64,000 nucleotides of DNA from Macrostomum lignano (Eukaryota), in assembly GCA_002269645.1 (NCBI GenBank), contig NIVC01001115.1, positions 187,403 to 251,402 on the forward strand, read 5' to 3'. The notes beneath the pieces were generated by a model, which saw nothing but the letters and a program-made list of their open reading frames with translations, searched no databases and was not told the origin of the DNA. Shown one piece after another: positions 11,525-48,597 of the stretch (its first letter is position 1; each line of letters opens with the position of its first letter). A program made the position numbers and the translations under genes.

Positions 11525-11627
11525 GACTGCCAGATGATGTGCAGATTTATGAGGCCTTCAATGCCGCTGAGCTGATAGATATGCTGAAGATGGCGGCGAA
11601 AACCGAAATTAGGCTTCTCAGTCAGTC

Positions 11628-13925: not shown

Positions 13926-16900
13926 TCAGTTGTTGCCATAGCGACGAGTGTTTCTTAGAGCTAGGCGAGGACGCTTCCGAATATTTGTCTGCTGCTGTTG
14001 GGACTGGGATGGGGTGCCGTTGCTACCCGTGCTGGCTGCTCGATCTCCGCTCGAGTCCGCCGCTGCCCGCCGTTTTCTCAACTCTCGGCCGCCAGCAGCC
14101 ACGTCGGCCGGGGTGCCAGACGGCGACTCCGCGCAGTCCGAGGGCGAACGTGGCGGCTCTTTATTGGTGGCGGCCCAGCGCTGACGGAGCTCCTCGATTG
14201 ACGGCTTGCTGTTGGACTGGAAGTCCAGCTGGGAATGCAGGAGGTTGACGATTAACAGGGGCTGTCCAGGTGCGAATGAGAGGGTCAAGGTGTGTCAATA
14301 TGAGTCAAGGCGGGTCAAGGTCGGTCAATGTGGGTCAAGGCGGGTCAAGACGGGTCAAGGTCGGTCAAGAAGGGTCAAGGTCGGAAATCTAATCTATCTT
14401 CTATCTATCTTTCTAATCTTCTAATCTTCTATCTATCTAATCTTCTAAATCTAATCTTCTATCTTCTAAATCTAATCTTCTATCTTCTATCTTAATAAAT
14501 ATACTAAATCTCTAATATTTGTTTGTATGCTTGAATGTCCATAACGCTCTAGAGACTGCAATTCTTCACCGATTTTGATCGCGTCTTCGCCAAAAGATTT
14601 TTGATCAGCCCAGGATTGTATGGTTAAAATTTCTTGTATCTGCTTCAATGCTAAAGGGATTAAATATTCGAAAAACATGATTTTTTGCAAAGGTCAAGCA
14701 GCTCTTTCGACTTGAAATGCGCTGTAAGAATGCTAGAGAAAAAACCGACTGACTGAATTCTGATTTTGATAAAGATTGCATCACAACAAGTTGAAAACAC
14801 TGTGCCAAGTTGAAAGACAGAAATTGCGTAACCATATTGCTAACTTTAATTGAGACTGATGCTGACTGCCTGAGTATTTGATTATGTCATAGCTGCTTCG
14901 TGTGACTTTCACTCGAAGAGAATTTGTGTTATTATTTGCATAACGTTCTAGAGATAGAACCATTGACCAATTTTAATCGCGTTTTTACGAAAAGATTTGT
15001 AATTATCTGGAAAGAAGACAGTTAAAATTTCTTTAATTGGCTTTAATGCTAAAGGTATTAAATATTCGAAAAACGAGTTTTCCCAATGCTTTTAATGGTA
15101 GGGCAAACTAGGTTGAATTCTTGACTGGACTGGCTGAATTCCAATTCCAATTATGATTGCGCCATAACTTTTCTCTCTCCACTGTGTAAGCTTCAATACT
15201 GGGGTTGCAGTGTGCAAGGAGAAAAAATGCTCAGTGGCTGCGTGTGTACATTCTGACCCTGGCTCTGACTGGCGGAGAAAATTGCTATTTATAGATTTCA
15301 CTCAATCAACTGTGCATTGGCTCCGCCTGCACGCCTACACACTGAGCAGCCTATCACTGCTATGTATTTTAACTTCAGTTCTGAAGCATATATGGCTGAT
15401 TTTGTTGTCCTCCCATCAATAGGCGGAGTAGCCGCAGTGTAGGCACTTAGGACTAGGTTTAGGCTAGACGTAAGGTCCAAGGTTCGAGTCTGCCTCCCCG
15501 GCGGATAATAAAAATTCAAAAAATTCAATAATTTATAGCTTGTGCCTGGACTAATTGAAACATTTTTTATTTAATTTCAATTGAAACATTTTTTTATTAA
15601 TTAGCAATTCATTTTTTGCTACTCGGCACAAGCCACTAATCAAATTTGATTTGTAAAAACTGCTTCGAGTATAACTGATCCCATCAATGGGTATTGTCTA
15701 GCTCCATAAAAGTACGAAATTACTAAACTGCAGACAATGCTGCTAAATGCTGAGCTTTTCAAGACTGCCGATATGTATGGAAAATTTATTAGTGAGCCGT
15801 AAAATGCTGAGCAAATTGCAGTTTGCAGAGGAGACTGAGGAGCCGGCCGAGAGGAGAACTGCAGCCTGCTGAGAGAATAAATGAAAATCGTTAATGGTAC
15901 AGTTGTAGACTGAAAATGAAATGACTGCAGACTGCTGAGGGGAACTGCAGACTGTCGAAGGGATCATTGCAGATTGCAAAGGGGAAACAACTGCAAACTG
16001 CTGAGGTAGTTCCTCCAGACGTATGAGCGTATAGCTGCAGACTGCTGAGAGGGAAAACTGCGGACTAATTAGAGGATAATGGCAGACTTCTGAGGCTTAT
16101 AACTAACTATTGAGTTTTGAGTGGATATTTACTGTGGAAGATTAAGTACAAGTTGTTTAGGGGATTTCTGCGGCTGCTAAGTGAAATATTTTTGGCTAAG
16201 GGGACAATTCTATGCCGCTGAGGGTATGCATTCTTAATTTTAATAAAAGTTAAAATTTTTAACTTTGCATTTTAGTTGTAGAATGCAAAGTGGATGATAA
16301 ATGCCGGCTGCTAAGAAATAACTGCAGTCTTTTTGCGGGATTAGATGAAGGGATAATTTCAGGTTGTTGTGGGGATAAATGCCGATTTCCGGGGGTTAAC
16401 TTCAAACGGCTGAAGTTGCTAAACTAGATTATTTCGACCACATGTCAATAGGCACAATAGCCGCAGTAGGCAGGCAGTATCAAGCAGAAGCAAACAGAAT
16501 GCTTTGATGTCAGCAGTTCGAGCCTGCATTGAAGCAGCGAATTTATCTTTGTGACCTGTGACAATAATGATTGCATCCTATGCAGATTCATGGAGATGGT
16601 AAACACTTAAATTTAAAGATACTTTTGCTGGGGCTGCGTTAGTCTTCTAGAGCAGTGCTAATCTGCTGTAAGTGCTAATTTGCAAAGGGTCGTACTAATC
16701 TGGGTGAGCAGTGCTAATCTGATGTACAATGAAGTAATAAATATGCAAGAGGATTGCAAATCAATTTTAAACTGCAAGTTGCAAACATTTCAAATGGTTT
16801 CGATTATTGAGAAGCATATGGAGATCAGTGGCCATCTGCTCCCAGATTTTGCGGAACAGTGCCGGTGAACCATTGCTAAACTGCTGGTGAACCATTGCTA

Positions 16901-19900
16901 AATTGCTGGTGAACCATCGCTAAAGTGATGGTAAACCATTGCTAAAGTGATGGTAAACCACTGTAAGTTTTTAAAAAATGCTACTTTAAACAGAAGAAAA
17001 CTCAACACAAGAAAAAGCGACAAAAGAATCATCATGTCAACCATAAAAGAAGCGGTCTGTCGAGAATAAAATACTCAATGTGAATTGCTAAGATGTCAAG
17101 GCTGGTATGGAAAATTTCTGTGATATCAAGACTCATGGGAGAATTTCTAAGATCTCAAGGCTCAGCGGTAATTGCTATAATGATGTGATTCTGGGGAGAA
17201 TTGCTTTGATTTCAAAGCTTAAGTTCAATTGCTGCGATGTCGATCTTAATGAGGGAATTTCTGAGATGTCAAGGCTTACTGGGGAATTATTGAGATTTCA
17301 AGGCTTACTGGGCCATGGGCCAGATATAGGCCCATGAGAGAAATTCTGAGATGTCTTGTCAAGTCTCAGAGGGAAATTCCTATACTGATGTGATTCTGGG
17401 CAGAATTGCTTTGATTTCAAAGTTCATTTGAGAAATTTCTGAGGTATCAAGGCTCATTAAAATTATTTGCTGTCAAGGCTCATGGAAATAATTTCTGGAA
17501 TGCTGTGGCTCTTGAGGGAATTGCCGACATTGTTAGGGTAAGAGTAAGACGTAAACCATATAAATGAATAGGCCTGTCTAACATTAAATACTCATTGGGG
17601 AATTGCTAAGTTGTAAAGGCTCGTGGGGGGATATCCGAATTATAATGTGGCTCAATGCTCAGGGGGATTGTTGTGATTGCAGTACCTGCTCATAATGCCG
17701 AAATTTTGTGGCTCAAATAGGAGTTGCTGAGATATCAAGGCTCATTGGGGAATAGCTGAGATTTCAAAGCTCACGGGGGATCCCTGTAATGCTGTAGGCT
17801 GTGACTCTTGGGTATTGCTGAGATGCTAAGGTTCACGGGGGAATGACTGAGATTTCAAAGGCTCCTAAAGCGAATAGCTGAAATTCACGAAATGTCAAGG
17901 TTCATTGGGTATTTGTTGAAATGCTGTGGTTTACGGTGGGAATTGCTGAAATTCTGTGACTTGGCAGGGTTAGTTTTCAACCATAAGACTCATGTGAAAG
18001 TGCCAAGATATCAAAAGGTTAGTCGCTAAAGTTTCATGCGCATGGGAAAATTGCTAAGATTTCAAAAGCTCATTGGGGAATTGCTGAAATTCTTGGGCTG
18101 AGAGGGGGAGTTGCTGAAATGCTGTGACTCGGCTGCAGGTTAAGGGTTAGGATTTGAGTTTAATTATAGAGCGATCGTCGTGTCAATCATAAATGATTCA
18201 TCAAGGAATTTCAAAGATTAAAGGGGCGAATTAGTTATATGCTTTGGCTCTTCGGGAATTGCTGACAGTTCAAGGCTTTCGGTGAAATTTAGATTTCAAA
18301 GCTTATGAGGAAGTTACTTAAATGCTCAGGCTCAAGGCTCACGGGGGAGATTGCTAACATGCCAAGACTCACTTATGGGTTAGGGTTAGGGGCTTAGGGT
18401 CAGTTTTGGTTCAATCATAGAATAACCACTCTGTTAACCATCAACTAAAGACTTGCTAAGATGGGAGTTGCTAAGATATCAAAGCTCATGAATGGAATCA
18501 CTGAGTTGACAAGGCTTATGAAGAAATTGCAGAGATATCAAGGCTCATAAGGGGATTGCTGAATTCTTGGGGGAGGGGAGTTGGGTTGTTGGGATGTCAA
18601 GGCTTACTCAGCTGAGAGAGCTGCGTAGATGTCAAGGCTCGAGTTTAATTGCTGCGATGTCGATGCTTAATGGGGGAACTGCTGAGATGTCAAGTCTTAC
18701 TGGGAATTGCTAAGATGTCAAGTCTTACTGGGAATTGCTAAAATGTGAAGGCTTTCTGGGGGAATGCTGAGATTTCAAGGCTTACTGGGGAAATGCTTAG
18801 ATTTCAAGGCTTACTGGGGGAATTCCTCAGATGTCAAGGCTTATTGGGGGAATTGCTGAGATGTTAAGGCTTACTGGGGGAATTGCAGCGATTTCAAGGC
18901 TTACTGGGGGAATTGCAGCGATTTCAAGGCTTACTGCGGCAATTGCTAAGATGTGAATTCTTTCTGGGGGAATTGCTAAGATTTCAAGGCTTACTGGGGG
19001 GATTGCTGAGATCTCGAGGCTTCTCAGCAATTCTTAGCAAGTATTAGCAATTGTTAGCTAAGTATTCTTAGCAATTCTTAGCAATTCTTGTCAAGGCTTA
19101 CTTGGGGAATTGCTGAGATTTCAAGGCTTACTGGGGGGAATTGCTAAGATGACAAGGCTCATGGACGATGGCTGAATTGTTAGGGGTGTTAGGTTGTTGG
19201 GCGATTGTCAGATAGTCAGGTAGTACGGCTGAAGTAGCTCATGTAGTTCAGATATTGAAATAGTACACACAAGTGATGCTGATTTCTGCTAATAGGAAAT
19301 ACCAGCGCATTTATTAAAGGTTTCATTCTTTGATTTAGGCTAATTTAAAGAGAGGGTCTAAGGCCGTCAGTGATTTGCATATTTGCTGCGGATAAGAATA
19401 TGCCCCGGCCAGTGACGATATGTACTAAGAGTTTGTGCTTGAAAGGATCAGCACTATTTGCTGATTGGAAAAGGGTTTTGGGCTGATGAAGGAAACTTTT
19501 TTGGCTGATGAAAGTTCTGATTCATGGCAATTTATTTTTGCCAAAATGAGAAAAGGTAATTTTTGATTAATGGAAAATTGATTAATGGAATTGGCTTTTG
19601 GGGCGAATTACTTAAATGCTTTGGCTCTACGAGGAGTTGCTGACAGGTCAAGGCTTTCGGTAAAATTCAGGTTACAAAGCTTATACCTGAGGAGGTTACC
19701 TTAATGCTGAGACTCAAGGCTCATGGTGGAAATTGCTAACATGCCAAGACTTACTTCTGCGTTAGGGTTAGGGGCTTAGGTGAGTTTTGGTTCCATCTTA
19801 GATTAACGGCTGTCAACCATCAATTAAAGACTTGCTAAGATATCAAAGCTCATGGGGGAATCGCTGAGTTACAAGGCTCATAAAGAAACTGCTGAATTAT

Positions 19901-22900
19901 CAAGGCTTATAAGGGGATTGCTGAATTCTTGGAAGAGAAGAGTCGGGTTGTTGGGATGTCAAGGCATACTGCGCTGGAAGACTTGCGTAGATGTCGAGGC
20001 TTAATGAGGGAACTGCTGAGACGCCAAGGCTTTCTGGAGGAATTCTGAGATTTCAAGGCTTACTGGGGGAATTCCTAAGATATCAAGGCTTACTGGGGGA
20101 ATTGCTGAGATATCAAGGCTTACTGAGGGAATTGCTGATATTTCGAGGCTTACGAGGGGAATTGCTGAGGTGTCAAGGCTTACTGGGGGGAATTGCTGAG
20201 ATGTCAAGTCCTACTGGGAATGGCTAAGATTTCAATGCTTACTGGGGGAATTACTGAGATGTCAAAGCTTACACTGGGAATTGCTGAGATCACAGAGCAT
20301 ACTGAGGGAATTTCTGAGATGTCAAGGATTACTGGGGGAGTTACTGAGATGTCAAAGCTTACTGGGGAATTGCTGAGATCTCAGAGCTTACGGGGCTAAT
20401 TGCTGAGATCTCAATGCTTTACTGGGGCAGTTGCTGAGATTTTAAGGCTTACTGGGGGAATTTCTGAGAGCTCAAGGCTTACTGGGGGAATTGCTGAGAT
20501 GTTAAGGCTTACTGGGGGAATGGCTGAGATGTCAAGGCTCATGGACGATGGCTGAATTGTTGGAGGGAGGGGGGGTTAGTTTGTTAGGCGATTGTCAGAT
20601 AGTCACGTTGTACAGCTCAAGTAGCTCATGTGTCATGTAATTCAGATAATGAAATAGTACACACAAGTGATGCTGATTTCTGCTAATAGGATATACCAGT
20701 GCATTCATTAAAGCTTTGATTCTTTGATTTAGGCTAATATAGAGAGAGGGTCTAAGGCCATCCAGGATTTGCATATTGAGCTCCTTCCAGTGACGATATT
20801 CAGTAATAGTTTGTCCTTGAAAGGATAAGAACTATTTGCTGATTTAGAAAGGGTTTTGGGCTGATGAAGGAAACTGTTTTGGCTGATGAAAGTTCTGATT
20901 CATGGATATTTATTTTTGCCGAAATGAGAAAAGGTAATTTTTGATTAATGGAAAACAACATTTTGGATACTTATAGTAAGGTTACTCTTGTGCCAAAATA
21001 AAAACCAATTGGTGTCATTTTCAAGGCTCCCCAGCGGGGGGCTAAATGGCTAGTCCTATATACTAAAAATGAGTTGTCTGTATATGGGTATGCGATTGAT
21101 TTCAGAAAAATTGGCTCAACCGATTTTCTTCAAACTTGCACCATTTGATCAGAAATTTTCCTGGGACGGTACATGCATCTTGGCTAAGAAATTGCTCAAT
21201 GTTAAAGGGATTAAATATTCGAAAAACATGCTTTTTTGCAAAGGTCAAGCCAAATTTTTGACTTGAAATGCATTGCAAGAATGCTAGAGAAAAAACTGAC
21301 TGGCTGAATTACAATTGTGATAAAGATTGCATCACAACAAGATGAAAACAGTGTCGAAAAAATGCACACAAGACTTGATTGTAATTGCATAACCAATATT
21401 GCTAACTTGAATTGAGACTGATACTAGCTGACTGAGAAATTGATTATGTCATAACTTTTTACTCTGACTGACTTGCTATAAGAATTGAATTATAAAGGCC
21501 ACAATTCATGTTCTCCAATTGAAAAGAGATAGCCTAGATGCAAACAGACTGGACTGCTAATGTAGCGACCTGGGTTCGAATCTTAGTAGTGCAAAAATTT
21601 TTTTTAATTAAAACACTTTAAAACACAAAATGCTTAACATAAAAGAAGCGCAATGTTAAATATAAAAGAGCCACCATGCCAAACATAAAAGTGTCACCAT
21701 GTCGAACACAGAAGAGACACCATGTCAAACATAAAAGAGCCACCATGTCAAACATATACGTGGCTCCATGTCAAACATTAAACAGCTACCATGTTAAACA
21801 TTATAGAGACACCATGTTAAACATAAGAGAGCCACCATGTCGAACATTAAGGAGTCACCATGTAAAACATAAAAGAGCCACCATGTCAAACATAAAAGAT
21901 CCACCATGTCAAACATAAGAGAGCCACCATGTCAAACATAGAAGAGCCACCATTTCGAACATTTAAGTGTCACCCTGTCAAACATCGACGTGACTCCATG
22001 TCGAACATTAAAGAGTCACCATGTCAAACATAAAATAGCCACCATGTTAAACATAAAAGAGGCACCATTTCGAACATTAAAGAGCCACCATGTCAAACAT
22101 CTACGTGACTCCATGTCAAACATAAGACAGCCACCGTGTCAAACATTAAAGATCCACCATGTCAATATTAAAGAACCATCAGGTCAAACATATACGTGAC
22201 TCCATGTCAAACATAAGACAGCCACCGTGTCAAACATTAAAGATCCACCATGTCAATATTAAAGAACCATCAGGTCAAACATATACGTGTCTCCATGACA
22301 AACATTAAAGAGTCATTATGTCAAGCATTAAAGGGCTACCATGTCAAACATTAAAGAGCCACCATGTCAAACATAAGAGAGCCACCATGTCGAACTTTAA
22401 AGAGCCACCATGTCAAACGTAAAAGAACCACCATGTCGAACATAAAAGAGCCGACATGTAGAACATAAAAAAGCCACCATGTCAAACATAAAAGAGCTAC
22501 CATGTCTAACATTAAAGAACCACTTTTTCAAACATTAAAGAGCCACCATGTCGAACATTAAGGAGCTACCATGTCAAACATTTAAGAGCTACCATGTCAA
22601 ACATAAAAGAGCCGACATGTAGAACATAAAAAGCCACCACGTCAAACATGAACGAAACACCATGTCAAACATCAAAGAGCCACCATGTCAAACATATACG
22701 TGACTTCATGTCAAACATTAAAGAGCCACCATGTCAAACATAAAAGAGCCACCATTTCGAACATTAAAGAGCCACCATGTCAAACATTGAAGAGCCACCA
22801 TGTCAAACATTAAAGAGCTACCATGTCAAACATAAAAGATCCACCATGTCAAACATAAGAGAGCCACCATGTCAAACATAGAAGAGCCACCATTTCGAAC

Positions 22901-25900: not shown

Positions 25901-28900
25901 TCAGGTCAAACATTAAAGAGCCACCATGTCAAACATAAAGGAGCCACTATGTCAAACATTAAAGAGCCACCATGTCGAATATTAAAGAGTCACCATGTCA
26001 AACATAAAAGAGCCACCATGTCAAACATAAAAGAGCCACCATGTCGAACTTTAAAGAGCCACCATGTCAAACATAAAAAAGCCACCATGTTAAACATTAA
26101 AGAGCCAGCATGCCAAACATTAAAGAACCACTTTGTCGAACATTAAAGAGCCACCATGTGGAACATTAAAGAGCTACCATGTCAAACATAAAGGAGCCAC
26201 CATGTCAAACATTAAAGAGCCACCATGTCGAATATTAAAGAGTCACCATGTCAAACATAAAAGAGCCACCATGTCGAACTTTAAAGAGCCACCATGTCAA
26301 ACATAAAAAAGCCACCATTTCGAACATTAAATAGCTACCATATCAAACATCTACGTGACTCCATGTCAAACATAAGAGAGCCGCCATGTCAAACATTAAA
26401 AATCCACCATGTCAATATTAAAGAGCCATCAGGTCAAACATTAAAGAGCCACCATGTCAAACATAAAGGAGCCACTATGTCAAACATTAAAGAGACACCA
26501 TGTCGAATATTAAAGAGTCACCATGTCAAACATAAAAGAGCCACCATGTCAAACATAAAAAAGCCACCATGTTAAACATTAAAGAGCCAGCATGCCAAAC
26601 ATTAAAGAACCACTTTGTCGAACATTAAAGAGCCACCATGTGGAACATTAAAGAGCTACCATGTCAAACATAAAGGAGCCACCATGTCAAACATTAAAGA
26701 GCCACCATGTCGAATATTAAAGAGTCACCATGTCAAACATAAAAGAGCCACCATGTCGAACTTTAAAGAGCCACCATGTCAAACATAAAAATGCCACCAT
26801 GTTAAACATTAAAGAGCCAGCATGCCAAACATTAAAGAACCACTTTGTCGAACATTAAAGAGCCACCATGTGGAACATTAAAGAGCTACCATGTCAAACA
26901 TTAAGGAGCCACCATGTCAAAACATTATTGAGCCACCATGCCAAACATAAAAAGAAGTGTCATACCAAACAAAATGGAACCACTATAAAGCTAAGGAAAT
27001 TGTTGCACTAGCTACTTGTTCTCTTGTGGATGCTTGCTATTTAAGGATGGATACTTGCTATTGGGAGATGCTTGCTCTTCGGGGTAGAGGGAACTTGCTA
27101 TCTGAGAGGGGGTTGCTAGATATCTATAAGGTCTCTTTGTATCCCAGTTTATGCTTGCTATCTGGGGTTGCATGTGGTCTGGGGGATGCTTGCTATCTGG
27201 GGGATGCTTGCAGTCTTGGGGATGCTTGCTATTTGGGGATCGATGCTTGAGTGCTGTCTTGGAATGTTTTTAGAGGGAATGTCTATTGTTTTTTATGAAG
27301 GCTTTTATTTCCCTGTCCATTTATTATTTGTAAAGAAGGATTCTATCCAGATGTCCCCCATCGGGGGGCAAAGATTGCTAGTCCTATATACTAAAAATGG
27401 TCTGTCTGTGTCTATCTATCTATCTATCTATGTGATCGATTAGAGAAAAAATGGCTGGACCGATTTTGTTCGAACTTGCACTGTTCGATCAGAAATTTTC
27501 CCGTGACTGTACATGCATCGTGGCTAAGAAATTGCTCGATGCTAAAGGCATTAAATCCTATATACTAAAAATGAGTTGTCTGTGGGTAGGTAGGTATGCG
27601 ATAGATTTCAGAAAAAATGGCTCAACCGATTTTCTTCAAACTTGTACCATTTGATCAGAAATTTTCCTGGGACGGTACATGCATCTTGGCTAAGAAATTG
27701 CTCTATGATAAAGGGATTAAATATTCGAAAAACATGCTTTTTTGCAAAGGTCAAGCAAAATTTTCGACTTGAAATGCATTGTAAGAATGCTAGAGAAAAA
27801 ACTGACTGGCTGAATTCCGATTGTGATAAAGATTGCATCACAACAAGTTGAAAACAGTGTCGAAGAAATGCACACACGACTTGATTAAAATTGCGTAACC
27901 ATATTGCTAACTTAAATTGAGACTGATACTGGCTGACTGAAAAATTGATTATGTCATAACTTTTTACTTCAATTGACTTGCTGTAAGAATTGAGTTATAA
28001 GGGCCACAATTCACGTTCTCCAATTGAAAAGAGATAGCCAAGATGCGAACAGACTGGAATGCTAATGTAGCGACCTGGGTTCGAATCTTAGTAGTGCAAA
28101 AAGATTTTTTTGTCAAAACACCTTAAAAACACAACAAAACTGCTAAACATAATAGAAGCGCAATGTCAAACATAGAAGAGCCACCATGTCGAACATTAAA
28201 GAGCCACCATGCCAAACATTAAAGAGCCACCATGTCAAACATTAAAGAGCCACCATGTCAAACATAAAAGAGCCACCATGTCGAACATTAAAGAGCCACC
28301 ATATCAAACATACATGTAGAAGAACCACCATGTTAAACATAGAAGAGCCACCATGTCGAACATTAAGGAGCCAACATTTTGAATGTAAAAGAGTTACCAT
28401 GTCAAACAAAAAATAAGCACTATGTCAAACATATACGTGACTCCATGTCAACGATTAAAAAGCCACCATTTCAAACATAGAAGAGCCACCATGTCAAACC
28501 TAAACAAGCCACCACGTCTAACATTTAAGAGCCACCATGTCAAACATTTAAGAGCCGCCGTGTCAAACATAAAAGAGCCACCAGGTTAAACATTAAAGAG
28601 CCACCATGTCAAACATAAAAGAGCCACCATGTCAAACATTAAAAAGCCACCATGTCGAACATAAAAGAGCCACCATGTAGAATATTAAAGAGCCACCATG
28701 AAGAACATTAAAGAGCCACCATGTCAAACATTTAAGAGCCACCATGAAGAACATTTAAGAGCCACCATCTCAAACATATATGTGACTTTATGTCAAACTT
28801 TAAAGAGCCACCATTTCGAACTTTAAATAGCCACTTTGTCAAACACTAGAGAGCCGCCGTGTCAAACATAAAAGAGCCACCAGGTTAAACATTAAAGAGC

Positions 28901-37900: not shown

Positions 37901-40900
37901 GCGTCATGTAAACAATCATAGAAGCGTCATGTAAAAATCATAGAAGCGTCATGTAAACAATCATAGAAGCGCCATGTAAACAATCATAGAAGCGTCATTT
38001 AAAAAATCATAGAAGCGTCATGTAAACAATCATAGAAGCGTCATGTAAACAATCATAGAAGCGTCATGCAAACAATCATAGAAGCGTCATGTAAACAATC
38101 ATAGAAGCGCCATGTAAACAATCATAGAAGCGTCATGTAAACAATCATAAAAGCGTTATTTAAAAAAAATCATAGAAGCGTCATATTAAAATCATAGAAG
38201 CGTCATTTAAAAAGTCATAGAAGCGTCATATAAAAATCATAGAAGCGTCATATAAAATATCATAGAAGCGTCATGTAAACAATCATAGAAGCGTAATTTA
38301 AAAAATCATAGAAGCGTCATGTAAAAAATCATAGAAGCGCTATGTAAACAATCATAGAAGCGTCATGTAAACAATCATAGAAGCGTCATGTAAAAATCAT
38401 AGAAGCGTCATGTAAACAATCATAGAAGCGTCATTTAAAAAATCATAGAAGCGTCATGAAAAAATCATAGAAGCGTCATGTAAACAATCATAGAAGCGTC
38501 AGGTGAAAAATCATCGAAGCGTCATCTTAAAAATCGTAGAAGCGTCATGTAAGAAATCATAGAAGCGTCATGTAAAAATCATAGAAGCGTCATGAAAAAA
38601 TCATAGAAGCCTCATTTAAAAAGTAATGAAAGTGTCATTTAAAATATTAAGAAGCATCATGGTAGAATAAAAGAAGCGTCATGTCAGACATGAAGGGTGT
38701 CATGTAAAAATTAAATGAAGCTATAATGCTGTGCTGGGGAGAATTACTGAGATGTCAAGGCTCTCAGAGAATAACTTAGATTACGGGGGGGGGGGGTTTC
38801 TGAGATGTCAAAGCAATAGTCAGAGGCTATTTCAAAGTTCATGTACTTTACTCAATTTTTTATTGCATTCTTTGTTGGCTCGCCACGGGGGGGGCGCTGA
38901 TAAAAAAGCGTAATGTAAAAAATAAAAGAAGCTTCATGTCGAAGTTAAGAGATTCATTTGGGAATCCCTACGATGTCGAGGCTTGCAGGGAATCGCTATA
39001 ATGCTGTAGTAGTGCTATAATGACTCTCAGAGAGAATTACCGAAATTTCAATGCTTTAGGGTTAGGTTAGGGTTAGGGTTAGGCTAGGGTTAGGGTTAGG
39101 CTAGGGTTAGGGTTAGAAGGTTGACAGATATTTTTAGATTTCCAAGGCTTATTGGGGGCATTGCTGAGATGTCAATGGGGGAAGTTGATATGTTAAAGCT
39201 TGTGGGGGGGAGTTATTGACATGTCAAGGCTTACAAGGTTTGACAGGAGATTTTTTAAGATTTCAAGGAAATATGTAGCTTATTAAAAAACGTGTATTGC
39301 ATTTCTTTGGCTCCCCAACGGGGGGCGTAGATTGCTAGTCCTATATACTAAAAATGAGTTGTTTGTTTGTACGCAATCGATTAGAGAAAAAATGGCTGGA
39401 CCGATTTTCATGAGACTTGCACTGTTCGATCAGAAATTTTCCTGGGACGGTACATGCATCTTGGCTAAGAAATTGCTCCATGTTAAAGCGATTAAATATT
39501 CGAAAAACATGCTTTTTTGCAAAGGTCAAGCAAACTTTTCGACTTGAAATGCATTGTAAGAATGCTAGAGAAAAAACTGACTGGTTGAATTCTGATTCTG
39601 AAATAGATTGCATCATTACTGAATTGTAACTCCGACTTGAATTGAAAATGTAGTGTGGAAGCGTAGCACCAGACTTGATTTAAATTGCGTAACCATATTG
39701 TTAACTGATACTGACTGACTGAGAAACTGATTATGTCATAACTGCTTCGTGTGATTTACTCTATGCTTGGATTTTAAAGTGTTGAATTATATAAGTGCAA
39801 AATTTGATGTTATCAAAACGATGAGAGCTAGCCTAGAGGTGAACAAGCTGAACTGCCAAATGCAGCGACGATGGTTCGAATTTTCATAGAGTATAATTTT
39901 TTTAATTAAAGCTTTTCAACTTCAGGAAAACTAAAAGACTTTTTAAAAAGAAGCGTCATGTAAAAAATCATAGAAGTGTCATGTAAACAATCATAGAAGC
40001 GCCATGTAAAAAATCGTAAAAGCGTTATATAAAAATCATAGAAGCGTAATGTAAAAATTCATAGAAGCGTCATGTAAACAATCATAGAAGCGTCATGAAA
40101 AAATCATAGAAGCGTCATGTAAAAAATCATAGAAGCGTCATGTAAACAATCATAGAATCGCCATGTAAAAATCGTAAAAGCGTTATATAAAAATCATGGA
40201 AGTGTAATGTAAAAAATCATAGAAGCGTCATGTAAACAATCATAGAAGCGCCATGTAAACAATCATAGAAGCGCCATGTAAAAAATCGTAAAAGCGTTAT
40301 ATAAAAATCATAGAAGCGTCATAAAAAATCATCGAAGTGACATGAAAAAATCATAGAAGCGTCATGTAAACAATCATAGAAGCGTCATGAAAAAATCATA
40401 GAAGCGTCATGTAAAAAATCATAGAAGCGTCATGTAAACAATCATAGAAGCGTCATGTAAAAAATCATAGAAGCGTCATGAAAAAATCATAGAAGCGTCA
40501 TGTAAAAAATCATAGAAGCGTCATGTAAACAATCATAGAATCGCCATGTAAAAATCGTAAAAGCGTTATATAAAAATCATGGAAGTGTAATGTAAAAAAT
40601 CATAGAAGCGTCATGTAAACAATCATAGAAGCGTCATGTAAAAAATCATAGAAGCGTCATGAAAAAATCATAGAAGCGTCATGTAAAAAATCATAGAAGC
40701 GTCATGTAAACAATCATAGAATCGCCATGTAAAAATCGTAAAAGCGTTATATAAAAATCATGGAAGTGTAATGTAAAAAATCATAGAAGCGTCATGTAAA
40801 CAATCATAGAAGCGTCATGTAAAAAATCATAGAAGTGTCATGTAAACAATCATAGAAGCGCCATGTAAAAAATCGTAAAAGCGTTATATAAAAATCATAG

Positions 40901-43900
40901 AAGCGTAATGTAAAAAATCATAGAAGCGTCATGTAAACAATCATAGAAGCGTCATGTAAAAAATCATAGAAGCGTCATGAAAAAATAATAGAAGCGTCAT
41001 GTAAAAAATCATAGAAGCGTCATGTAAACAATCATAGAAGCGTCATGTAAAAAATCATAGAAGCGTCATGAAAAAATCATAGAAGCGTCATGTAAAAAAT
41101 CATAGAAGCGTCATGTAAACAATCGTAGAATCGCCATGTAAAAATCGTAAAAGCGTTATATAAAAATCATGGAAGTGTAATGTAAAAAATCATAGAAGCG
41201 TCATGTAAACAATCATAGAAGCGTCATGTAAAAAATCATAGAAGCGTCATGCAAACAATCATAGAAGCGTCATGTAAAAATCATAGAAGCGTCATGAAAA
41301 AATCATAGAAGCGTCATGTAAACAATCATAGAAGCGTCATGCAAACAATCATAGAAGCGTCATGTAAACAATCATAGAAGCGTCATGTAAAAGTCAAAAT
41401 AGCGTCATAAAAATCATAGAAGCGTCATAAAAAATCATCGAAGTGACATGAAAAAATCATAGAAGCGTAATGTAAAAAATCATAGAAGCGTCATGAAAAA
41501 ATCATAGAAGTGACATGAAAAAACCATTAATGCGTCATGTAAAAAATCATGGAAGCGTCATGCAAAAATCATAGAAGCGTCATAAAAAACCATAGAAGCG
41601 TCATGTAAACAAGCATAGAAGCGTCATGTAAAAATCATAGAAGCGTCATGCAAAATTCATAGAAGCGTCATGAAAAAATCATAGAAGCGTCATGTAAACA
41701 ATCATAGAAGCGTCATGTAAAAATCATAGAAGCGTCATGTAAAAAATCATAGAAGCGTCATGTAAACAATCATAGAAGCGTCATGTAAACAATCATAGAA
41801 GCGTCATGAAAAAATCATAGAAGCGTCATGTAAAAAAGCATAAAAGCGTCATTAAAAATCATAGAAGCGTCATGCAAACAATCATAGTAGCGTCATGTAA
41901 AAATCATAGAAGCGTCATGCAGACAATCATAGTAGCGTCATTTAAAAAATCATAGAAGCGTCATGTAAACAATCATAGAAGCGTCATGTAAAAGTCAAAA
42001 TAGCGTCATAAAAAATCATAGAAGCGTCATAAAAAATCATCGAAGTGACATGAAAAAATCATAGAAGCGTAATGTAAAAAATCATAGAAGCGTCATGAAA
42101 AAATCATAGAAGTGACATGAAAAAACCATTAATGCGTCATGTAAAAAATCATGGAAGCGTCATGCAAAAATCATAGAAGCGTCATGAAAAAATCATAGAA
42201 GCGTCATGTAAAAATCATAGAAGCGTCATGTAAAAATCATAGAAGCGTCATGTAAAAAATCATAGAAGCGTCATGTAAACAATCATAGAAGCGTCATGTA
42301 AACAATCATAGAAGCGTCATGAAAAAATCATAGAAGCGTCATGTAAAAAAAGCATAAAAGCGTCATGTAAGAAATCATAGAAGCGTCATGTAAACAATCA
42401 TAGAAGCGTCATAAAAAACCATAGAAGCGTCATGTAAACAAGCATAGAAGCGTCATGTAAAAATCATAGAAGCGTCATGCAAAATTCATAGAAGCGTCAT
42501 GAAAAAATCATAGAAGCGTCATGTAAAAATCATAGAAGCGTCATGTAAAAATCATAGAAGCGTCATGTAAAAAATCATAGAAGCGTCATGTAAACAATCA
42601 TAGAAGCGTCATGTAAACAATCATAGAAGCGTCATGAAAAAATCATAGAAGCGTCATGTAAAAAAAGCATAAAAGCGTCATGTAAACAATCATAGAAGCG
42701 TCATGTAAACAATCATAGAAGCGTCATAAAAAAACCATAGAAGCGTCATGTAAACAAGCATAGAAGCGTCATGTAAAAATCATAGAAGCGTCATGTAAAC
42801 AAGCATAGAAGCGTCATGTAAACAATCATAGAAGCGTCATGTAAACAATCATAGAAGCGTCATGTAAAAATCATAGAAGCGTCATGTAAAAAAATCATAG
42901 AAGCGTCATGTAAACAAGCATAGAAGCGTCATGTAAAAATCAAAGAAGCGTCATGTAAACAATCATAGAAGCGTCATGTAAACAATCATAGAAGCGTCAT
43001 AAAAAAACCATAGAAGCGTCATGTAAACAAGCATAGAAGCGTCATGTAAACAATCATAGAAGCGTCATGTAAACAATCATAGAAGCGTCATGTAAAAAAT
43101 CATAGAAGCGTCATGTAAACAATCATAGAAGCGTCATGTAAACAATCATAGAAGCGTCATGTAAACAATCATAAAAGAGTCATGTAAACAATCATAGAAG
43201 CGTCATGTAAACAATCATAGAAGCGTCATGTAAACAATCATTGAAGCGTCATAAAAGAACCATAGAAGCGTCATGTAAACAAGCATAGAAGCGTCATGTA
43301 AAAATCATAGAAGCGTCATGTAAACAATCATAGAAGCGTCATGTAAACAATCATAGAAGCGTCATGTAAACAATCATAGAAGCGTCATGTAAAAATCATA
43401 GAAGCGTCATTTAAAAAATCATAGAAGCGTCATGTAAACAAGCATAGAAGCGTAATGTAAAAATCAAAGAAGCGTCATGTAAACAATCATAGAAGCGTCA
43501 TGTAAACAATCATAGAAGCGTCATAAAAAAACCATAGAAGCGTCATGTAAACAATCATAGAAGCGTCATAAAAAAAACCATAGAAGCGTCATGTAAACAA
43601 GCATAGAAGCGTCATGTAAACAATCATAGAAGCGTCATGTAAACAATCATAGAAGCGTCATGAAAAAATCATAGAAGCGTCATGTAAAAAAAGCATAAAA
43701 GCGTCATGTAAGAAATCATAGAAGCGTCATGTAAACAATCATTGAAGCGTCATAAAAGAACCATAGAAGCGTCATGTAAACAAGCATAGAAGCGTCATGT
43801 AAAAATCATAGAAGCGTCATGTAAACAATCATAGAAGCGTCATGTAAACAATCATAGAAGCGTCATGTAAACAATCATAGAAGCGTCATGTAAAAATCAT

Positions 43901-46900
43901 AGAAGCGTCATGTAAAAAAATCATAGAAGCGTCATGTAAACAAGCATAGAAGCGTAATGTAAAAATCAAAGAAGCGTCATGTAAACAATCATAGAAGCGT
44001 CATGTAAACAATCATAGAAGCGTCATAAAAAAACCATAGAAGCGTCATGTAAACAATCATAGAAGCGTCATAAAAAAACCATAGAAGCGTCATGTAAACA
44101 AGCATAGAAGCGTCATGTAAACAATCATAGAAGCGTCATGTAAACAATCATAGAAGCGTCGTGAAAAAATCATAGAAGCGTCATGTAAAAAAAGCATAAA
44201 AGCGTCATGTAAGAAATCATAGAAGCGTCATGTAAACAATCATAGAAGCGTCATAAAAAACCATAGAAGCGTCATGTAAACAAGCATAGAAGCGTCATGT
44301 AAAAATCATAGAAGCGTCATGCAAAATTCATAGAAGCGTCATGAAAAAATCATAGAAGCGTCATGTAAAAATCATAGAAGCGTCATGTAAAAATCATAGA
44401 AGCGTCATGTAAAAAATCATAGAAGCGTCATGTAAACAATCATAGAAGCGTCATGTAAACAATCATAGAAGCGTCATGAAAAAATCATAGAAGCGTCATG
44501 TAAAAAAGCATAAAAGCGTCATGTAAAAAATCATAGAAGCGTCATGTAAACAATCATAGAAGCGTCATAAAAAAACCATAGAAGCGTCATGTAAACAAGC
44601 ATAGAAGCGTCATGTAAAAATCATAGAAGCGTCATGTAAACAAGCATAGAAGCGTCATGTAAACAATCATAGAAGCGTCATGTAAACAATCATAGAAGCG
44701 TCATGTAAAAATCATAGAAGCGTCATGTAAAAAAATCATAGAAGCGTCATGTAAACAAGCATAGAAGCGTCATGTAAAAATCAAAGAAGCGTCATGTAAA
44801 CAATCATAGAAGCGTCATGTAAACAATCATAGAAGCGTCATAAAAAACCATAGAAGCGTCATGTAAACAAGCATAGAAGCGTCATGTAAACAATCATAGA
44901 AGCGTCATGTAAACAATCATAGAAGCGTCATGTAAAAAATCATAGAAGCGTCATGTAAACAATCATAGAAGCGTCATGTAAACAATCATAGAAGCGTCAT
45001 GTAAACAATCATAAAAGAGTCATGTAAACAATCATAGAAGCGTCATGTAAACAATCATAGAAGCGTCATGTAAACAATCATTGAAGCGTCATAAAAGAAC
45101 CATAGAAGCGTCATGTAAACAAGCATAGAAGCGTCATGTAAAAATCATAGAAGCGTCATGTAAACAATCATAGAAGCGTCATGTAAACAATCATAGAAGC
45201 GTCATGTAAACAATCATAGAAGCGTCATGTAAACAATCATAGAAGCGTCATGTAAACAATCATAGAAGCGTCATGTAAAAATCATAGAAGCGTCATGTAA
45301 AAATCAAAGAAGCGTCATGTAAACAATCATAGAAGCGTCATGTAAACAATCATAGAAGCGTCATAAAAAAACCATAGAAGCGTCATGTAAACAATCATAG
45401 AAGCGTCATAAAAAAACCATAGAAGCGTCATGTAAACAAGCATAGAAGCGTCATGTAAACAATCATAGAAGCGTCATGTAAACAATCATAGAAGCGTCAT
45501 GTAAAAAATCATAGAAGCGTCATGTAAACAATCATAGAAGCGTCATGTAAACAATCATAGAAGCGTCATGTAAAAAATCATAGAAGCGTTATGTAAACAA
45601 TCATAGAAGCGTCATGTAAACAATCATAGAAGCGTCATGTAAACAATCATAGAAGAGTCATGTAAACAATCATAGAATCGTCATGTAAACAAGCATAGAA
45701 GCGTCATGTAAACAAGCATAGAAGCGTCATGTAAAAAATCATAAAAGCGTCATGTAAAAAATCATAAAAGCGTCATTTAAAAAATCATAGTTGCGTCATG
45801 TAAAAATCATAGAAGCGTCATGCAAACAATAATAGAAGCGTCATGGTAAAATCATAGAAGCGTCATGCAAACAATCATAGAAGCCTCATATAAAAACTAA
45901 TGAAAGTGTCATTTAAAAAATTAAGAAGAATAATGGAAGAATAAAAGAAGCGTCATGTAAAAATCAAAAGAAGCGCCATGTCAGACATGAAAGGTGTCAT
46001 ATAAAAATTAAATGAAGCTATAGTACAGTGCTGTGCTGGGGAGAATTACTGAGACGTCAAGGCTCACAGAGAATAACTGAGATTACAGGTGGGGGGGGTT
46101 TCTGAGATGTCAAAGCAAAAGTCAGAAGCTACTTCAAAGTTCATGTACTTTACTCAATTTTTATTACATTCATTGTTGGCTCGCCACAGGGGGGGCGCTG
46201 ATAGAAGCAGAGTCATGTAAAAAATAAAAGTAGCACTATGTATACATATAAGAAAAGTCATGTCGAAGTTAAAAGATTCATTTGGGAATTGCTACAATGT
46301 CAAAGCTTGGTGGAAATCGTTATAGTGCTGTGATTCTTAAAGAAGGAAACACTAAAATGCCAAGGCTTAGGGGAGAAGAATTGCTGAGATTTCAAGGCTT
46401 TAGGTTGGGTTAAAGTTAGGTTTAGGTCAGGTGTGGGTTGAGGGTTATATTTTATCGGGTTTCAAGGTTAACAGGGGATTTTTTTAGATTTCAAGATTTA
46501 TGGGGGGCATCGCTGACATGTCAAGGCTTACGGGGGGAATAGCTGAGATGTCAAGGCTCACGGGGGTATAAATGAGATTTCAAGGCTAAAGTCAGAAGCT
46601 ACATGTAGTTTAATGAAAACTTTTTATTACATTTTTTGTTGGCTCCTCAGGGCTCACTGATAGAAAAAGCATAATGTAAAAAATAAAAGAAGCTTCATGT
46701 CGAAGCGAAGAGATTCATTTGGGAATCCCTACGAGGGAATCGCTATAACGCTGTAGTAGTGCTATAATGACTCAGAATTACTGAAATTTCAATGCTTTAG
46801 GGTTAGGTTAGGGTTAGGGTTAGGGTTAGGCTAGGGTTAGGGTTAGGCTAGGGTTAGGGTTAGAAGGTTGACAGATTTTTTTAGACTTCAAGGCTTATTT

Positions 46901-48597
46901 GGGGCATCGCTGAGATGTCAAGGGGGGAGTTGATTTGTTAAAGCTTGTGGGGGGAATTACTGACATTTCAAGGCTTACAAGGGACTTCTGAGGTATATTG
47001 CAAAGAGATGTTACATGTAGTTTATTACAAAACTTGTACTGTATTTTTGGCTCCCTAACGCTAAGATACTAAGCTAAAAAATACTACTAGCTCTTCACAA
47101 ACTTATGCAGATGTCAGGCTGTAGGGTTAGTGTTAGGGTTGGTATTAGGGTTTAGGTTTAGGGTTAGGTTCAGGGTTATTGCGTTAAGATTCGGGTTAGG
47201 GTTAGGGTTAGGGTAGCTTATAACTTGGCTCATTTAGCTTATTAAAAATGTTTATCATGGAAGCATCATGCAAAAATAATGGAAGCGTCATGCAAAAACA
47301 ATGGAAGCGTCATGCCAAAAATCATAGAAGCATCGATCATGCAAAAACTCATGGACAAAATATTGAATTTAGGGTTTTGGTTAGGGTTAGAATTTTGACA
47401 GGAGATTTTTTAAGATTTCAAGGCTACATGTAGCTTATTAAAAATACGTGTATTGCATTTCTTTGGCTCCCCAACGGGGGGCGTAGATTGCTAGTTATTT
47501 TTAAAAATCAACGACCGACATTGTTTTAATGTCGGACAATGTCGGTCAAGGAGGGTCAATGTGGGTCAATGTCAGTCAGTGTGGGTCAAGGTCGGTCAGT
47601 GTGGGTCAAGGTTGGTCAGTGTGGGTCAAGGTCGGTCAGTGTAGGTCAAGGTCGGTCAGTGTGGTTCAAGGTCGGTCAGTGTGGGTCAAGGTCGGTCAAG
47701 AAGGGTCAAGGTCGGAAATTATTTTTAAAAATCAACGACCGACATTGTTTTAATGTCGGACAATGTCGGTCAAGGAGGGTCAATGTGGGTCAATGTCAGT
47801 CAGTGTGGGTCAAGGTCGGTCAGTGTGGGTCAAGGTTGGTCAGTGTGGGTCAAGGTCGGTCAGTGTAGGTCAAGGTCGGTCAGTGTGGTTCAAGGTCGGT
47901 CAGTGTGGGTCAAGGTCGGTCAGTGTGGGTCAAGGTCGGTCAGTGTGGGTCAAGGTCGGTTAGTGTGGGTCAAGGTCGGTCAGTGTGGGTCAAGGTCGGT
48001 TAGTGTGGGTCAAGGTCGGTCAGTGTGGGTCAATGTCAGTCAGTGTGGGTCAAGGTCGGTCAGTGTGGGTCAAGGTCGGTCAGTGTGGGTCAAGGTCGGT
48101 CAGTGTGGGTCAAGGTCGGTCAAGGTGAGCATGGCGGGCCAAATTGAGTCAGGGTTCGAGGTGAGTCATGGTGGTCCAGGCAGCATAAAACTAGGTCCAT
48201 CCCCAAGTCTTACCAGTTTATCCCACTTTTTAGCCTGTGCAATTAGAACGACATTTTTGTCCGAATAGCCGTTCACAAGGGCTGTAGAGAATAAGTATTT
48301 TGCAACAAAAAGTAGCTAATAATTATCGCTAATTTGGCTAAATAAAAAGTACATCACAAAAGTTCAAGCCAGACTTACGCATGGCTGGCTTCAAATCTTC
48401 AGAGTATTGCTGTTGAGTGCAGGACGACTGTAAAAGGAAAATAATTTGGCATACAGATGAAATTTTCCGCTTTAATATATGCATCAAATTTGAAATCAGA
48501 AGCTCACTCGATTGACTTTTGCATGCCGAGCGAAACTGTCGGGCGAGAATGACGGTAAATCCGTCAGTAGGGGGCTGGGATGACCGGATGGGGCAGC
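13926..48597 (-). CDS. Divergent DDA1-like paralog; exons 48597-48508, 48427-48379, 48281-48214 and terminal exon from 14261/14228/14216 to 13926; ATG exon not found
   Basis: AAPSGHPSPLLTDLPSFSPDSFARHAKVNR|SSCTQQQYSEDLKPAM|PLVNGYSDKNVVLIAQAKKWDKL|..RKRPRLALRNTRRYGNN*. Canonical splice sites join in phase (0,1,0), matching the neighbouring DDA1 gene. It retains LxDLPS..F, P(L/I)VN and WDK motifs. Linking the terminal exon across 34 kb is inferred. Confidence 0.6.
14285..14387. repeat. GGTCAA-type repeat, left half of the Helitron target region
   Basis: Ends tcggtcaagaagggtcaaggtcggaaa, identical to 47692-47718. Confidence 0.85.
14388..21053 (+). mobile_element. Non-autonomous Helitron unit 1 (divergent subfamily)
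   Basis: Starts TC after A. 5' module ..atactaaatctctaatatttgtttgtatg..caccgatttt resembles the other units. Ends with hairpin ctccccagcggggggc plus CTAG (21050-21053). Contains ggaattgctgagatgtcaaggcttact arrays and an internal duplication of about 1.4 kb. Confidence 0.8.
21054..27381 (+). mobile_element. Non-autonomous Helitron unit 2
   Basis: 5' TCCTATATACTAAAAATG; 3' tcccccatcggggggcaaagattgCTAG. Internal agagccaccatgtcaaacattaa array and short gatgcttgctatctgggg array. Confidence 0.9.
23637..24668. mobile_element. hAT-like MITE with about 295-bp terminal inverted repeats and 8-bp TSD
   Basis: TSD CAAACATA on both sides. Ends CAAGGACTTCTAGAC...GTCTAGAAGTCCTTG; inverted match 23637-23933 vs 24374-24668. 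The empty site is seen at about 22685. Confidence 0.92.
27382..27555 (+). mobile_element. 174-bp truncated Helitron 5' stub
   Basis: Matches the start of unit 5 (35541 onward) and breaks at ggcattaaa, where the intact copy continues with t. Confidence 0.85.
27556..31615 (+). mobile_element. Non-autonomous Helitron unit 3
   Basis: A|TCCTATATACTAAAAATG start; hairpin cccccatcggggggc plus CTAG at 31612-31615. Confidence 0.9.
31616..35540 (+). mobile_element. Non-autonomous Helitron unit 4 with expanded 19-20-bp gatgcttgctatctggggg array (34370-35400)
   Basis: Same termini; CTAG at 35537-35540. Confidence 0.9.
35541..39338 (+). mobile_element. Non-autonomous Helitron unit 5 with 22-23-bp tagaagcgtcatgtaaacaatca array (36170-38700)
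   Basis: Same 5' module; hairpin ctccccaacggggggc plus CTAG at 39335-39338. Confidence 0.9.
39339..47494 (+). mobile_element. Non-autonomous Helitron unit 6 with about 6-kb tagaagcgtcatgtaaacaatca array (39950-45990)
   Basis: 5' TCCTATATACTAAAAATG; terminal hairpin plus CTAG at 47491-47494, followed by the host T. Confidence 0.9.
47495..48125. repeat. 20-bp cagtgtgggtcaaggtcggt minisatellite within a 224-bp higher-order duplication
   Basis: Blocks start ttatttttaaaaatcaacgacc at 47495 and 47719. Confidence 0.92.

Follow-up and report, generated by a model that had tools for sequence, protein, structure and literature searches.

In the flatworm Macrostomum lignano, a four-exon gene under selection is best explained as a diverged duplicate of DDA1, whose last intron would have been swollen by an array of Helitrons and whose start codon may be provided by a spliced leader (SL); this explanation, taken as a whole, is given a probability of about 0.7. 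DDA1 (DET1- and DDB1-associated protein 1, Pfam PF10172) is a small protein that forms the fourth core subunit of CRL4 ligases, and is usually treated as single and highly conserved. The gene, referred to below as the paralog, sits on the same strand as DDA1, 2.1-2.4 kb upstream, in the window (the whole stretch of 64,000 nucleotides that was analyzed), and its features are listed in Table 1.

Table 1. Positions in the window of the paralog, the elements of its last intron and the neighbouring DDA1 gene
Feature	Position	Strand	Details
Acceptor CAG before exon 1	48598..48600	-	Proposed SL trans-splice acceptor (TTGCAG/G)
Paralog exon 1	48508..48597	-	90 nt, AAPSGHPSPLLTDLPSFSPDSFARHAKVNR; DDA1-type N-terminal motif; donor GTGAGC, phase 0
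Paralog exon 2	48379..48427	-	49 nt, SSCTQQQYSEDLKPAM + c; phase-1 end within Pro codon
Paralog exon 3	48214..48281	-	68 nt, (P)LVNGYSDKNVVLIAQAKKWDKL; predicted helix; donor GTAAGA, phase 0
Paralog last intron	14229..48213	-	33,985 nt (L001, a syntenic contig: 644 nt)
Proximal part of original intron	47495..48122	.	20-bp minisatellite (CCTTGACCCACACTGACCGA type) and 224-bp tandem duplication
Helitron array	14388..47494	+	33,107 bp, six head-to-tail non-autonomous units, antisense to the gene
Distal part of original intron	14270..14387	.	Same minisatellite as 47495..48122
Paralog terminal coding exon	13926..14228	-	303 nt including stop; acceptor is the one used by A0A1I8J365
DDA1 exon-2 acceptor	11325..11327	-	CAC in the window, CAG in L001
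Bona fide DDA1	10448..11524	-	Exons 11524-11408, 11324-11273, 11185-11124, 10831-10448; phases 0/1/0

The original prediction had placed three micro-exons of 90, 49 and 68 nt in this region, and these proved to be exact in coordinates and lengths, with GT/AG borders. Donors are GT and acceptors are AG throughout exons 1-3, no splice site of the paralog is damaged, and the reading frame in the window is open across 170 codons, which encode a mostly disordered protein of 170 aa. The terminal exon has two alternative phase-0 acceptors, at 14261 and 14216, and from either of them, as from 14228, the TGA at 13928-13926 is reached in frame, as had been claimed. The same four exons are joined in the same order, through the 14228-type acceptor (WDKL/LDFQSNSKP), in the M. 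lignano protein A0A1I8J365 of UniProt (P0001; 178 aa), which shows 95% identity to the paralog with 100% coverage. The gene had been described as unannotated. It is indeed absent from the NCBI annotation of L001, a syntenic M. lignano contig that carries the same gene, but the description is not fully right, because A0A1I8J365 models a sister copy under another name ('Myb-like domain-containing protein' in UniProt and UniRef).

Between the window and L001, the differences in the paralog ORF are synonymous in 11 cases and non-synonymous in 5 (dN/dS 0.14, binomial p 2.7e-4), a pattern of substitution which indicates that purifying selection is acting on it. V29, M47, N92, T137 and A160 are variants that distinguish the window copy. 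In the comparison with L001, introns 1 and 2 show the same conservation as the CDS (97%), and therefore the low divergence may be partly regional. The joining of the exons in the database model, together with the dN/dS ratio, confirms at the level of sequence that the four exons form one real, selected gene.

The two copies differ at the start of the reading frame. A genomic ATG occupies in L001 the exact position of the CAG of the window (48600-48598), and no in-frame ATG is found in the window between the upstream stop and exon 1 of the paralog. A study by Cheng et al. from 2006 in J Biol Chem 281:733 reportedly deals with flatworm mRNAs whose initiator AUG comes from the spliced leader. The SL of M. 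lignano ends in ATG and its trans-acceptor motif is [T/C]TNCAG (PMC8629364), and a further paper, citing Cheng 2006, presents AUG initiation from the SL as an established process of flatworms, with the term slORFs for mRNAs of this kind (PMC9851317). The window copy resembles such mRNAs in that an acceptor fitting this motif (TTGCAG/GCTGCC) lies directly before an in-frame ORF that lacks a genomic ATG, in a species whose SL ends in AUG; it differs from them in that the sister copy encodes a genomic ATG exactly at the acceptor CAG. Given the CAG in the window and the ATG in L001, it is probably the SL that donates the AUG to the window copy, a proposal made with some reserve. Trans-splicing at TTGCAG would yield the same MAAPSG... 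protein as the copy with the genomic ATG, so that two start modes for the same protein, the SL mode being the proposed one, would coexist. The copy behind A0A1I8J365 also has CAG at this position, and the model shows Q there and no Met in all its 178 aa; since its start is encoded by genomic sequence that precedes the CAG, this model is not an SL-spliced transcript. Its cluster includes no Logan-derived protein.

The introns of the paralog measure 80, 97 and 33,985 nt in the window and 80, 97 and 644 nt in L001, and the alignment of both sequences (88-92% identity) skips 14385-47871. The inflation of the last intron by a Helitron block, already proposed in the original prediction, is borne out by this difference in size and by an exact empty site in L001: the joined flanks of the window (...AAAAATAA/TTTCCGACC...), compared with those of L001 (...TCTAATAA/TTTCCGACC...), match the uninterrupted L001 site AATAA/TTTCC. 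The 224-bp tandem duplication in the proximal part of the original intron copies the segment that bears the Helitron target site.

The termini of the inserted units are those of Helitrons (5'-TC, 3'-CTRR and a GC-rich hairpin near the 3' end). The six 3' ends, each with a GC hairpin and CTAG, are located at 21053, 27381, 31615, 35540, 39338 and 47494, and consist of (G)TCCCC.A.CGGGGGGC, 8-10 nt and CTAG. The 5' ends are TCCTATATAC or TCTAATCTATC, units 2-6 start with TCCTATATACTAAAAATG, and five internal CTAG/TCCTATATAC junctions are present, while the interior of the array is mainly made up of 23-, 30- and 18-bp satellite arrays. The block is similar to known head-to-tail arrays of non-autonomous Helitrons with internal repeats in its 5'-TC, in the GC hairpin located ~10 nt before the 3'-CTAG, in the insertion between A and T without target duplication, in the abutting of units as CTAG/TC, and in the satellites held within the units. 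In contrast, the first unit here has a degenerate 5' end after a (TCTAATC)n microsatellite, and no Rep/helicase ORF of an autonomous partner was found in the window. Regarding Rep/helicase capacity within the block, no coding-looking ORF of at least 70 aa appears in 14388-21700, and all ORFs of at least 100 aa in the rest fall, judged by their position, inside mapped tandem-repeat arrays. It is proposed that a Helitron landed between the A and the T of the last-intron minisatellite in the window copy, and that the insert would then have become six satellite-carrying non-autonomous units (33.1 kb), enlarging the intron from ~0.64 to 34 kb and leaving the splice sites untouched.

The absence of the ATG (CAG in the window, ATG in L001) would also be expected if the window copy were a dying homeologue or allele of the paralog, no longer expressed as protein, with the function kept by the compact L001-type copy. 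This decay would be in line with a repeat-filled intron of 33,985 nt, compared with a mean of about 1.1 kb (PMC10468722; third data column of the annotation table, taken as M. lignano), and with the redundancy of gene copies in M. lignano, a recent polyploid (PMC10468722). The adjacent gene points in the same direction, as the window copy of DDA1 has probably lost its exon-2 splice site, the acceptor being CAC instead of CAG with no in-frame alternative in the window. However, the ORF of the paralog is intact over its 170 codons, every one of its splice sites is intact, and synonymous differences are in clear excess over non-synonymous ones. Moreover, A0A1I8J365 is otherwise L001-like, and the existence of this second copy with CAG and no Met suggests that the SL-AUG start works, and speaks against decay. 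A dying window copy is thus regarded as rather unlikely, and a functional gene with an SL-supplied start is preferred.

The gene is likely to derive from an old tandem duplication of DDA1 followed by strong divergence, an ancestry proposed on the basis of weak sequence signals, tandem position and gene structure. As had been predicted, the intron phases are 0/1/0 in both the paralog and DDA1, those of the window DDA1 assuming that exon 2 is placed as in its annotated protein (P0002), and in both genes intron 2 splits a Pro codon (c/cc) that is followed by (I/L)VN. The first three exons of the paralog measure 90/49/68 nt in the window and 93/49/68 nt in L001, where exon 1 is counted from the genomic ATG; those of DDA1 measure 117/52/62 nt.

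Membership of the DDA1 family, favoured by position and gene structure, is only weakly reflected in profile scores, and the check with the family profile yielded a sub-threshold match restricted to the N-terminal part. The 69-aa N-terminal part of the paralog scores 12.6 bits on Pfam DDA1 (library-wide E 0.16), below the cut-off of 24 bits, whereas P0002 reaches 34.1 bits. DDA1 is the sole Pfam match of this part, and the full-length protein has no match to Pfam DDA1. An independent profile built from 48 diverse DDA1s, leaving out the M. lignano sequences, gives 11.0 bits, which is significant as a single test (E 2e-5, Z=1); among 50,000 shuffles, 1 attained this score, and the paralog exon ranks second for the DDA1 profile among 3,449 six-frame fragments of the window. 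Using hhalign, residues 9-71 of the paralog align with residues 5-70 of DDA1 in 61 collinear columns that cover the whole domain (E 2.7e-4, probability 41.6%), and BLASTP of the paralog against M. lignano DDA1 returns no alignment. With respect to the DDA1-like motifs that had been attributed to the micro-exons, the N-terminal one rises above chance, but the middle and C-terminal parts do not.

The N-terminal peptide of human DDA1 (residues 4-19) docks into the BPA groove of DDB1, and its residues in contact with DDB1 are F4, L5, L8, P9, N15, F16 and F19 (PMC6288126). In the hhalign register, four of these seven are identical in the paralog (L5, L8, P9 and F16), and the other three have changed to L (F4), S (N15) and H (F19). 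Asn15 is a strictly conserved residue of DDA1, occupied by Ser in the paralog.

Like DDA1, the paralog is a small disordered protein with an N-terminal hydrophobic L-x-x-L-P ... F peptide followed by a predicted helix with a W-D-K end, its intron phases match those of M. lignano DDA1, and its C-terminus holds a basic K-R-P-R-L element similar to PRKVARTD / PKVPRLD. Unlike DDA1, it remains below the family threshold, has Ser and His in place of Asn15 and Phe19, and possesses an additional Trp helix along with a long basic tail. It also lacks the central PSVYLPT motif: M. lignano DDA1 retains VSVYVST at this position, and the paralog has instead SSCTQQQYSEDLKPAM in exon 2, with a sub-profile score at chance. 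The counterpart of the C-terminal amphipathic helix of DDA1 (NILLRYLHQQWDKK) in the paralog, NVVLIAQAKKWDKL, is predicted to be helical with low confidence, and the C-terminal sub-profile matches KWDK alone (p about 0.02-0.03). According to the proposed course of divergence, the paralog would have kept the peptide that in DDA1 docks into the BPA propeller of DDB1 (LLTDLPSFSPDSF) and the helix ending in WDK, would have lost the central PSVYLPT and would have gained a basic NLS-like tail.

These signals are faint enough to consider that the gene, although real, has no relation to DDA1 and is a lineage-restricted orphan in which the LxDLPSF..F motif, the WDK and the intron phases would be alike by chance. 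Such an origin would agree with the absence of BLASTP similarity to DDA1, with a Pfam score that is half of the gathering cut-off, with the hhalign probability of 41.6% and with a signal confined to about 15 residues. It would also agree with the lack of relatives elsewhere: no relative of the paralog outside M. lignano was found in a protein-cluster search, and there is therefore no intermediate sequence. Nevertheless, the only family that scores is precisely that of the same-strand gene located 2.1-2.4 kb downstream, the phases and the split Pro codon followed by (I/L)VN are common to both genes, the single-test p is about 2e-5, and the hhalign match is collinear across the whole domain, so that an orphan is considered unlikely and descent from DDA1 is retained. 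It is highly improbable that the protein is a Myb/SANT-like DNA-binding protein with its Trp helices (KKWDKL ... LRQRWAAT, 21 residues apart) forming part of a Myb repeat, since, in spite of the UniRef name of A0A1I8J365 and of two predicted helices with Trp at Myb-like spacing, neither the full protein nor the 61-aa region matches Pfam Myb/SANT at E up to 10, and the AlphaFold2 model (pLDDT 48.5) shows isolated helices and no three-helix bundle.

The swelling of the paralog intron by Helitrons is a tidy yet fairly ordinary piece of genome evolution. The locus provides a dated case of ~50-fold intron inflation by a Helitron array, with the empty site kept in the sister copy. It also illustrates how gene callers in this genome are led astray by micro-exons, Met-less ORFs and satellite ORFs, and the pair of copies with an ATG or a proposed SL acceptor on the same three bases offers a compact system for testing whether the SL donates start codons. 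As the docking peptide would be retained and the rest replaced, the paralog could occupy the DDA1 groove on DDB1, and binding to DDB1, judged from the sequence, is given slightly less than even odds. A more doubtful proposal is that Macrostomum keeps a second, fast-evolving DDA1-derived subunit in which only the DDB1-docking peptide has been retained and the rest has turned into a basic nuclear-type tail, which would form a variant or competing CRL4 core and whose start codon would be interchangeable, between homeologous copies, from a genomic ATG to an SL AUG. If true, a selected and diverged second DDA1 would represent a natural experiment on the role of DDA1 beyond its docking peptide, and the paralog would be a candidate for modulating CRL4 in an animal that serves as a regeneration model.

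The four-exon gene on the minus strand at 13926-48597, a candidate diverged tandem copy of DDA1 (the DDB1-associated CRL4 subunit, Pfam PF10172), is a real gene. The exon coordinates, lengths and phases given in the original prediction were exact when the sequence was re-read, and the gene itself was borne out both by a protein that joins its exons and by the signs of selection on its frame. A search of protein collections with the conceptual product yielded a single match, UniProt A0A1I8J365 from Macrostomum lignano (178 aa; 95% identity, 100% query coverage), by which the DNA is assigned to this species or a very close relative. This sister copy links all four exons, in the order foreseen, and enters the last one at the 14228-type acceptor (..KKWDKL/LDFQSNSKP.., where the slash marks the junction). 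Its automatic UniProt name, 'Myb-like domain-containing protein', is unsupported, as there are zero Pfam Myb or SANT matches; the single-sequence AlphaFold2 model of this protein, whose pLDDT of 48.5 is too low to support a fold search, consists of isolated helices only.

A syntenic M. lignano contig (NIVC01002740.1 from the Mlig_3_7 assembly, hereafter L001), which encodes the annotated protein of the neighbouring DDA1 (P0002, BOX15_Mlig027972g3), is collinear with the minus strand of the window at 88-92% identity. This contig holds a compact copy of the paralog at 6552-7885, with exons of 93/49/68/303 nt and introns of 80/97/644 nt, against introns of 80/97/33,985 nt in the window, and its NCBI annotation lacks any gene at this locus. 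The coding sequences of the two copies differ at 16 sites, 11 of them synonymous and 5 non-synonymous. With dN/dS at 0.14 and a binomial probability of 2.7e-4 for a non-synonymous count this low, the reading frame is, as judged from this comparison, under purifying selection, with the caveat that the two short introns (97%) are conserved as much as the coding sequence, against 84-86% for the flanks. The variants V29, M47, N92, T137 and A160 distinguish between copies. The 160-aa gene that NCBI places between the two genes of L001 (8841-9376, equivalent to window 12018-12910; no Pfam match) does not qualify as the paralog: it is entirely contained in a 24-bp satellite, and it is probably spurious.

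Coordinates of the exons of the probable paralog, the Helitron array and repeats in the window
Feature	Position	Strand	Remarks
Paralog exon 1	48597-48508, 90 nt	minus	starts at acceptor TTGCAG/GCT; good GT donor
Paralog exon 2	48427-48379, 49 nt	minus	good GT donor and AG acceptor
Paralog exon 3	48281-48214, 68 nt	minus	good GT donor and AG acceptor
Paralog terminal exon	nested acceptors 14261, 14228, 14216 to TGA 13928-13926	minus	3/3 acceptors in phase 0
Helitron insert	14388-47494, 33,107 bp	+	
Internal Helitron 3' ends	21053, 27381, 31615, 35540, 39338		five, alike in design
Telomere-like TTAGGG-type runs	47120-47215, 47370-47390, about 18380, about 19770		inside Helitron units
Large minisatellites	8566-9854, 13304-13721, 49444-51779, 52445-54040, 54709-55303		periods 22-46 bp

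The inflation of the last intron by Helitrons is demonstrated. A 'Helitron block' and a growth from about 0.8 kb to 34 kb had been predicted, and the measured lengths are 644 nt in L001 and 33,985 nt in the window; the mean annotated intron is ~1.1 kb (annotation table of PMC10468722, third column of data, taken as M. lignano). The alignment of L001 to the window stops at 47872 and restarts at 14384. In gene orientation, the near junction of the insert reads ...TTTTTAAAAATAA / CTAGCAATCTACGCCCCCCGTTGGGGAGCC... and the far one ...GATAGATTAGA / TTTCCGACC..., and L001 preserves the uninterrupted empty site ...TTTTCTAATAA/TTTCCGACC.... Read on the + strand, the insert bears the hallmarks of a Helitron, since it starts with TC, ends with GGCTCCCCAACGGGGGGC-GTAGATTG-CTAG and sits between A and T without target duplication. 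As each of the five internal 3' ends is abutted directly by TCCTATATACTAAAAATG, the insert is a head-to-tail array of six units of 3.8-8.2 kb each, all six antisense to the paralog. The units are composed mostly of 23-, 30- and 18-bp satellites, no credible ORFs were found within the insert, and a 20-bp minisatellite lies on both flanks of the array. Neither splice site of this intron has been altered. This is an ordinary transposon event, though unusually clean.

Other features were observed in and around the array. An extra 5' end (TCCTATATACTAAAAATG) at 27556, 174 bp into unit 3 and without CTAG before it, may correspond to a truncated or nested unit, and telomere-like repeats run inside several stretches of the units. 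The intron segment holding the target site forms a 224-bp tandem duplication (about 47500-47800), in which the copy near 47751 is intact and that near 47527 is interrupted by the array.

In the window paralog, the stretch from the preceding in-frame stop to exon 1 contains no in-frame ATG. The sequence CATTG-ATG-GCTGCC of L001 (6552-6554) is replaced in the window by CATTG-CAG-GCTGCC (48598-48600), and the sister protein, which elsewhere carries all five L001-type residues, shows Q at the start position and zero Met in 178 residues. The CAG at the position of the L001 ATG, together with this Met-less protein, suggests that the start codon is somewhat more probably than otherwise donated by the spliced leader (SL). 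The M. lignano SL is CGGTCTCTTACTGCGAAGACTCAATTTATTGCATG, and trans-splicing affects ~30% of the genes of this species, with [T/C]TNCAG as its acceptor motif (PMC8629364); the terminal AUG of a flatworm SL is a documented initiator according to the statement in PMC9851317 that cites Cheng et al. 2006. Trans-splicing after TTGCAG would set the SL AUG in frame ahead of GCT GCC, and the product would be an MAAPSG... protein identical to that of the genomic-ATG copy. Against an SL start stands the fact that the sister protein opens with residues encoded in the genome ahead of the CAG, and for this reason its model does not represent an SL-spliced transcript. A cis-spliced upstream coding exon is a weak alternative source of the start, for which the only candidate has an ATG at 49377 and a phase 0 donor, GTGAAT, at 49326. 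Retro-copying of an SL as the origin of the L001 ATG was discarded on two grounds: L001 reads TCATTGATG versus TTATTGCATG in the SL, and the introns are retained.

The gene downstream of the paralog, at 10448-11524, is a true DDA1. The score of P0002 is 34.1 bits against Pfam DDA1 and 41.8 bits against our own DDA1 profile, built from 48 diverse DDA1s, M. lignano sequences being left out; these came from a representative search, as a word-index search with human DDA1 returned vertebrates only. In the window, the exon-2 acceptor of this gene (11327-11325, minus) is CAC, versus CAG in L001 (about 10196-10198). The 83-nt intron contains no in-frame alternative AG, and use of the next AG leads to a frameshift and then a stop in exon 3; an AAAAG acceptor was overruled by the annotated P0002 and L001. 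Otherwise the domain matches that of L001 residue for residue, all 3 nucleotide differences being synonymous and 0 non-synonymous. The window DDA1 is probably a null allele or homeologue, or else an assembly error. Given the recent, hidden polyploidy of M. lignano (PMC10468722), the window may show a more degenerate copy among several that are redundant, which touches whether this copy works and not the identity of the gene.

With regard to the surroundings, the last DDA1 intron of L001 (10690-11660) includes ~1 kb of non-repetitive sequence missing from the window copy. Large minisatellites occupy most of the intergenic space round both genes, also in L001 at other copy numbers. Ahead of the DDA1 ATG, CTGGCAG/TC (11527-11533) is a possible trans-splice acceptor, so that a single transcription unit might, by processing, give rise to both the paralog and DDA1 transcripts.

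The derivation of the paralog from DDA1 is likely (probability about 0.75) from the combination of weak sequence signals, position and gene structure. BLASTP gives no alignment between the paralog and P0002, and on Pfam DDA1 the paralog fails the cut-off for formal family membership (12.6 bits versus 24, over the first 69 residues only), DDA1 being the sole Pfam family matched by these residues. On our own profile it scores 11.0 bits (E 2e-5 as one single test), a value matched by 1 of 50,000 composition-preserving shuffles. In a six-frame scan of the window (3,449 fragments), exon 1 of the paralog comes second with 7.9 bits, between DDA1 exon 1 (20.2) and DDA1 exon 3 (7.0), with the next chance match at 4.6. 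With hhalign, residues 9-71 are collinear with DDA1 5-70 (E 2.7e-4, probability 41.6%). When the parts are scored separately, the N-terminal motif alone is significant; the PSVYLPT region is unrecognisable by sub-region scoring on our own profile, and the helices of the two proteins have little in common past KWDK. The two genes are same-strand neighbours in tandem, with 2.1-2.4 kb between them, and share the intron phases 0/1/0 and similar exon sizes (93/49/68 nt in the L001 paralog, counting exon 1 from the genomic ATG, or 90/49/68 in the window, versus 117/52/62 nt in DDA1). In both, intron 2 divides a Pro codon (c/cc) that is followed by (I/L)VN. The original proposal of a DDA1 paralog is supported in part, by the tandem arrangement, the phases and the profile score, but not by BLASTP or the Pfam cut-off.

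Human DDA1 requires residues 1-28 to bind DDB1, and these residues suffice for it, via F4, L5, L8, P9, N15, F16 and F19 (PMC6288126). The paralog keeps L5, L8, P9 and F16; it has L in place of F4, Ser in place of the invariant N15 and His in place of F19. Binding of the paralog to DDB1 is no more than plausible, and its participation in a variant CRL4 complex is speculation. The paralog is likely a new, divergent member of the known DDA1 family, in a lineage-specific tandem duplication.
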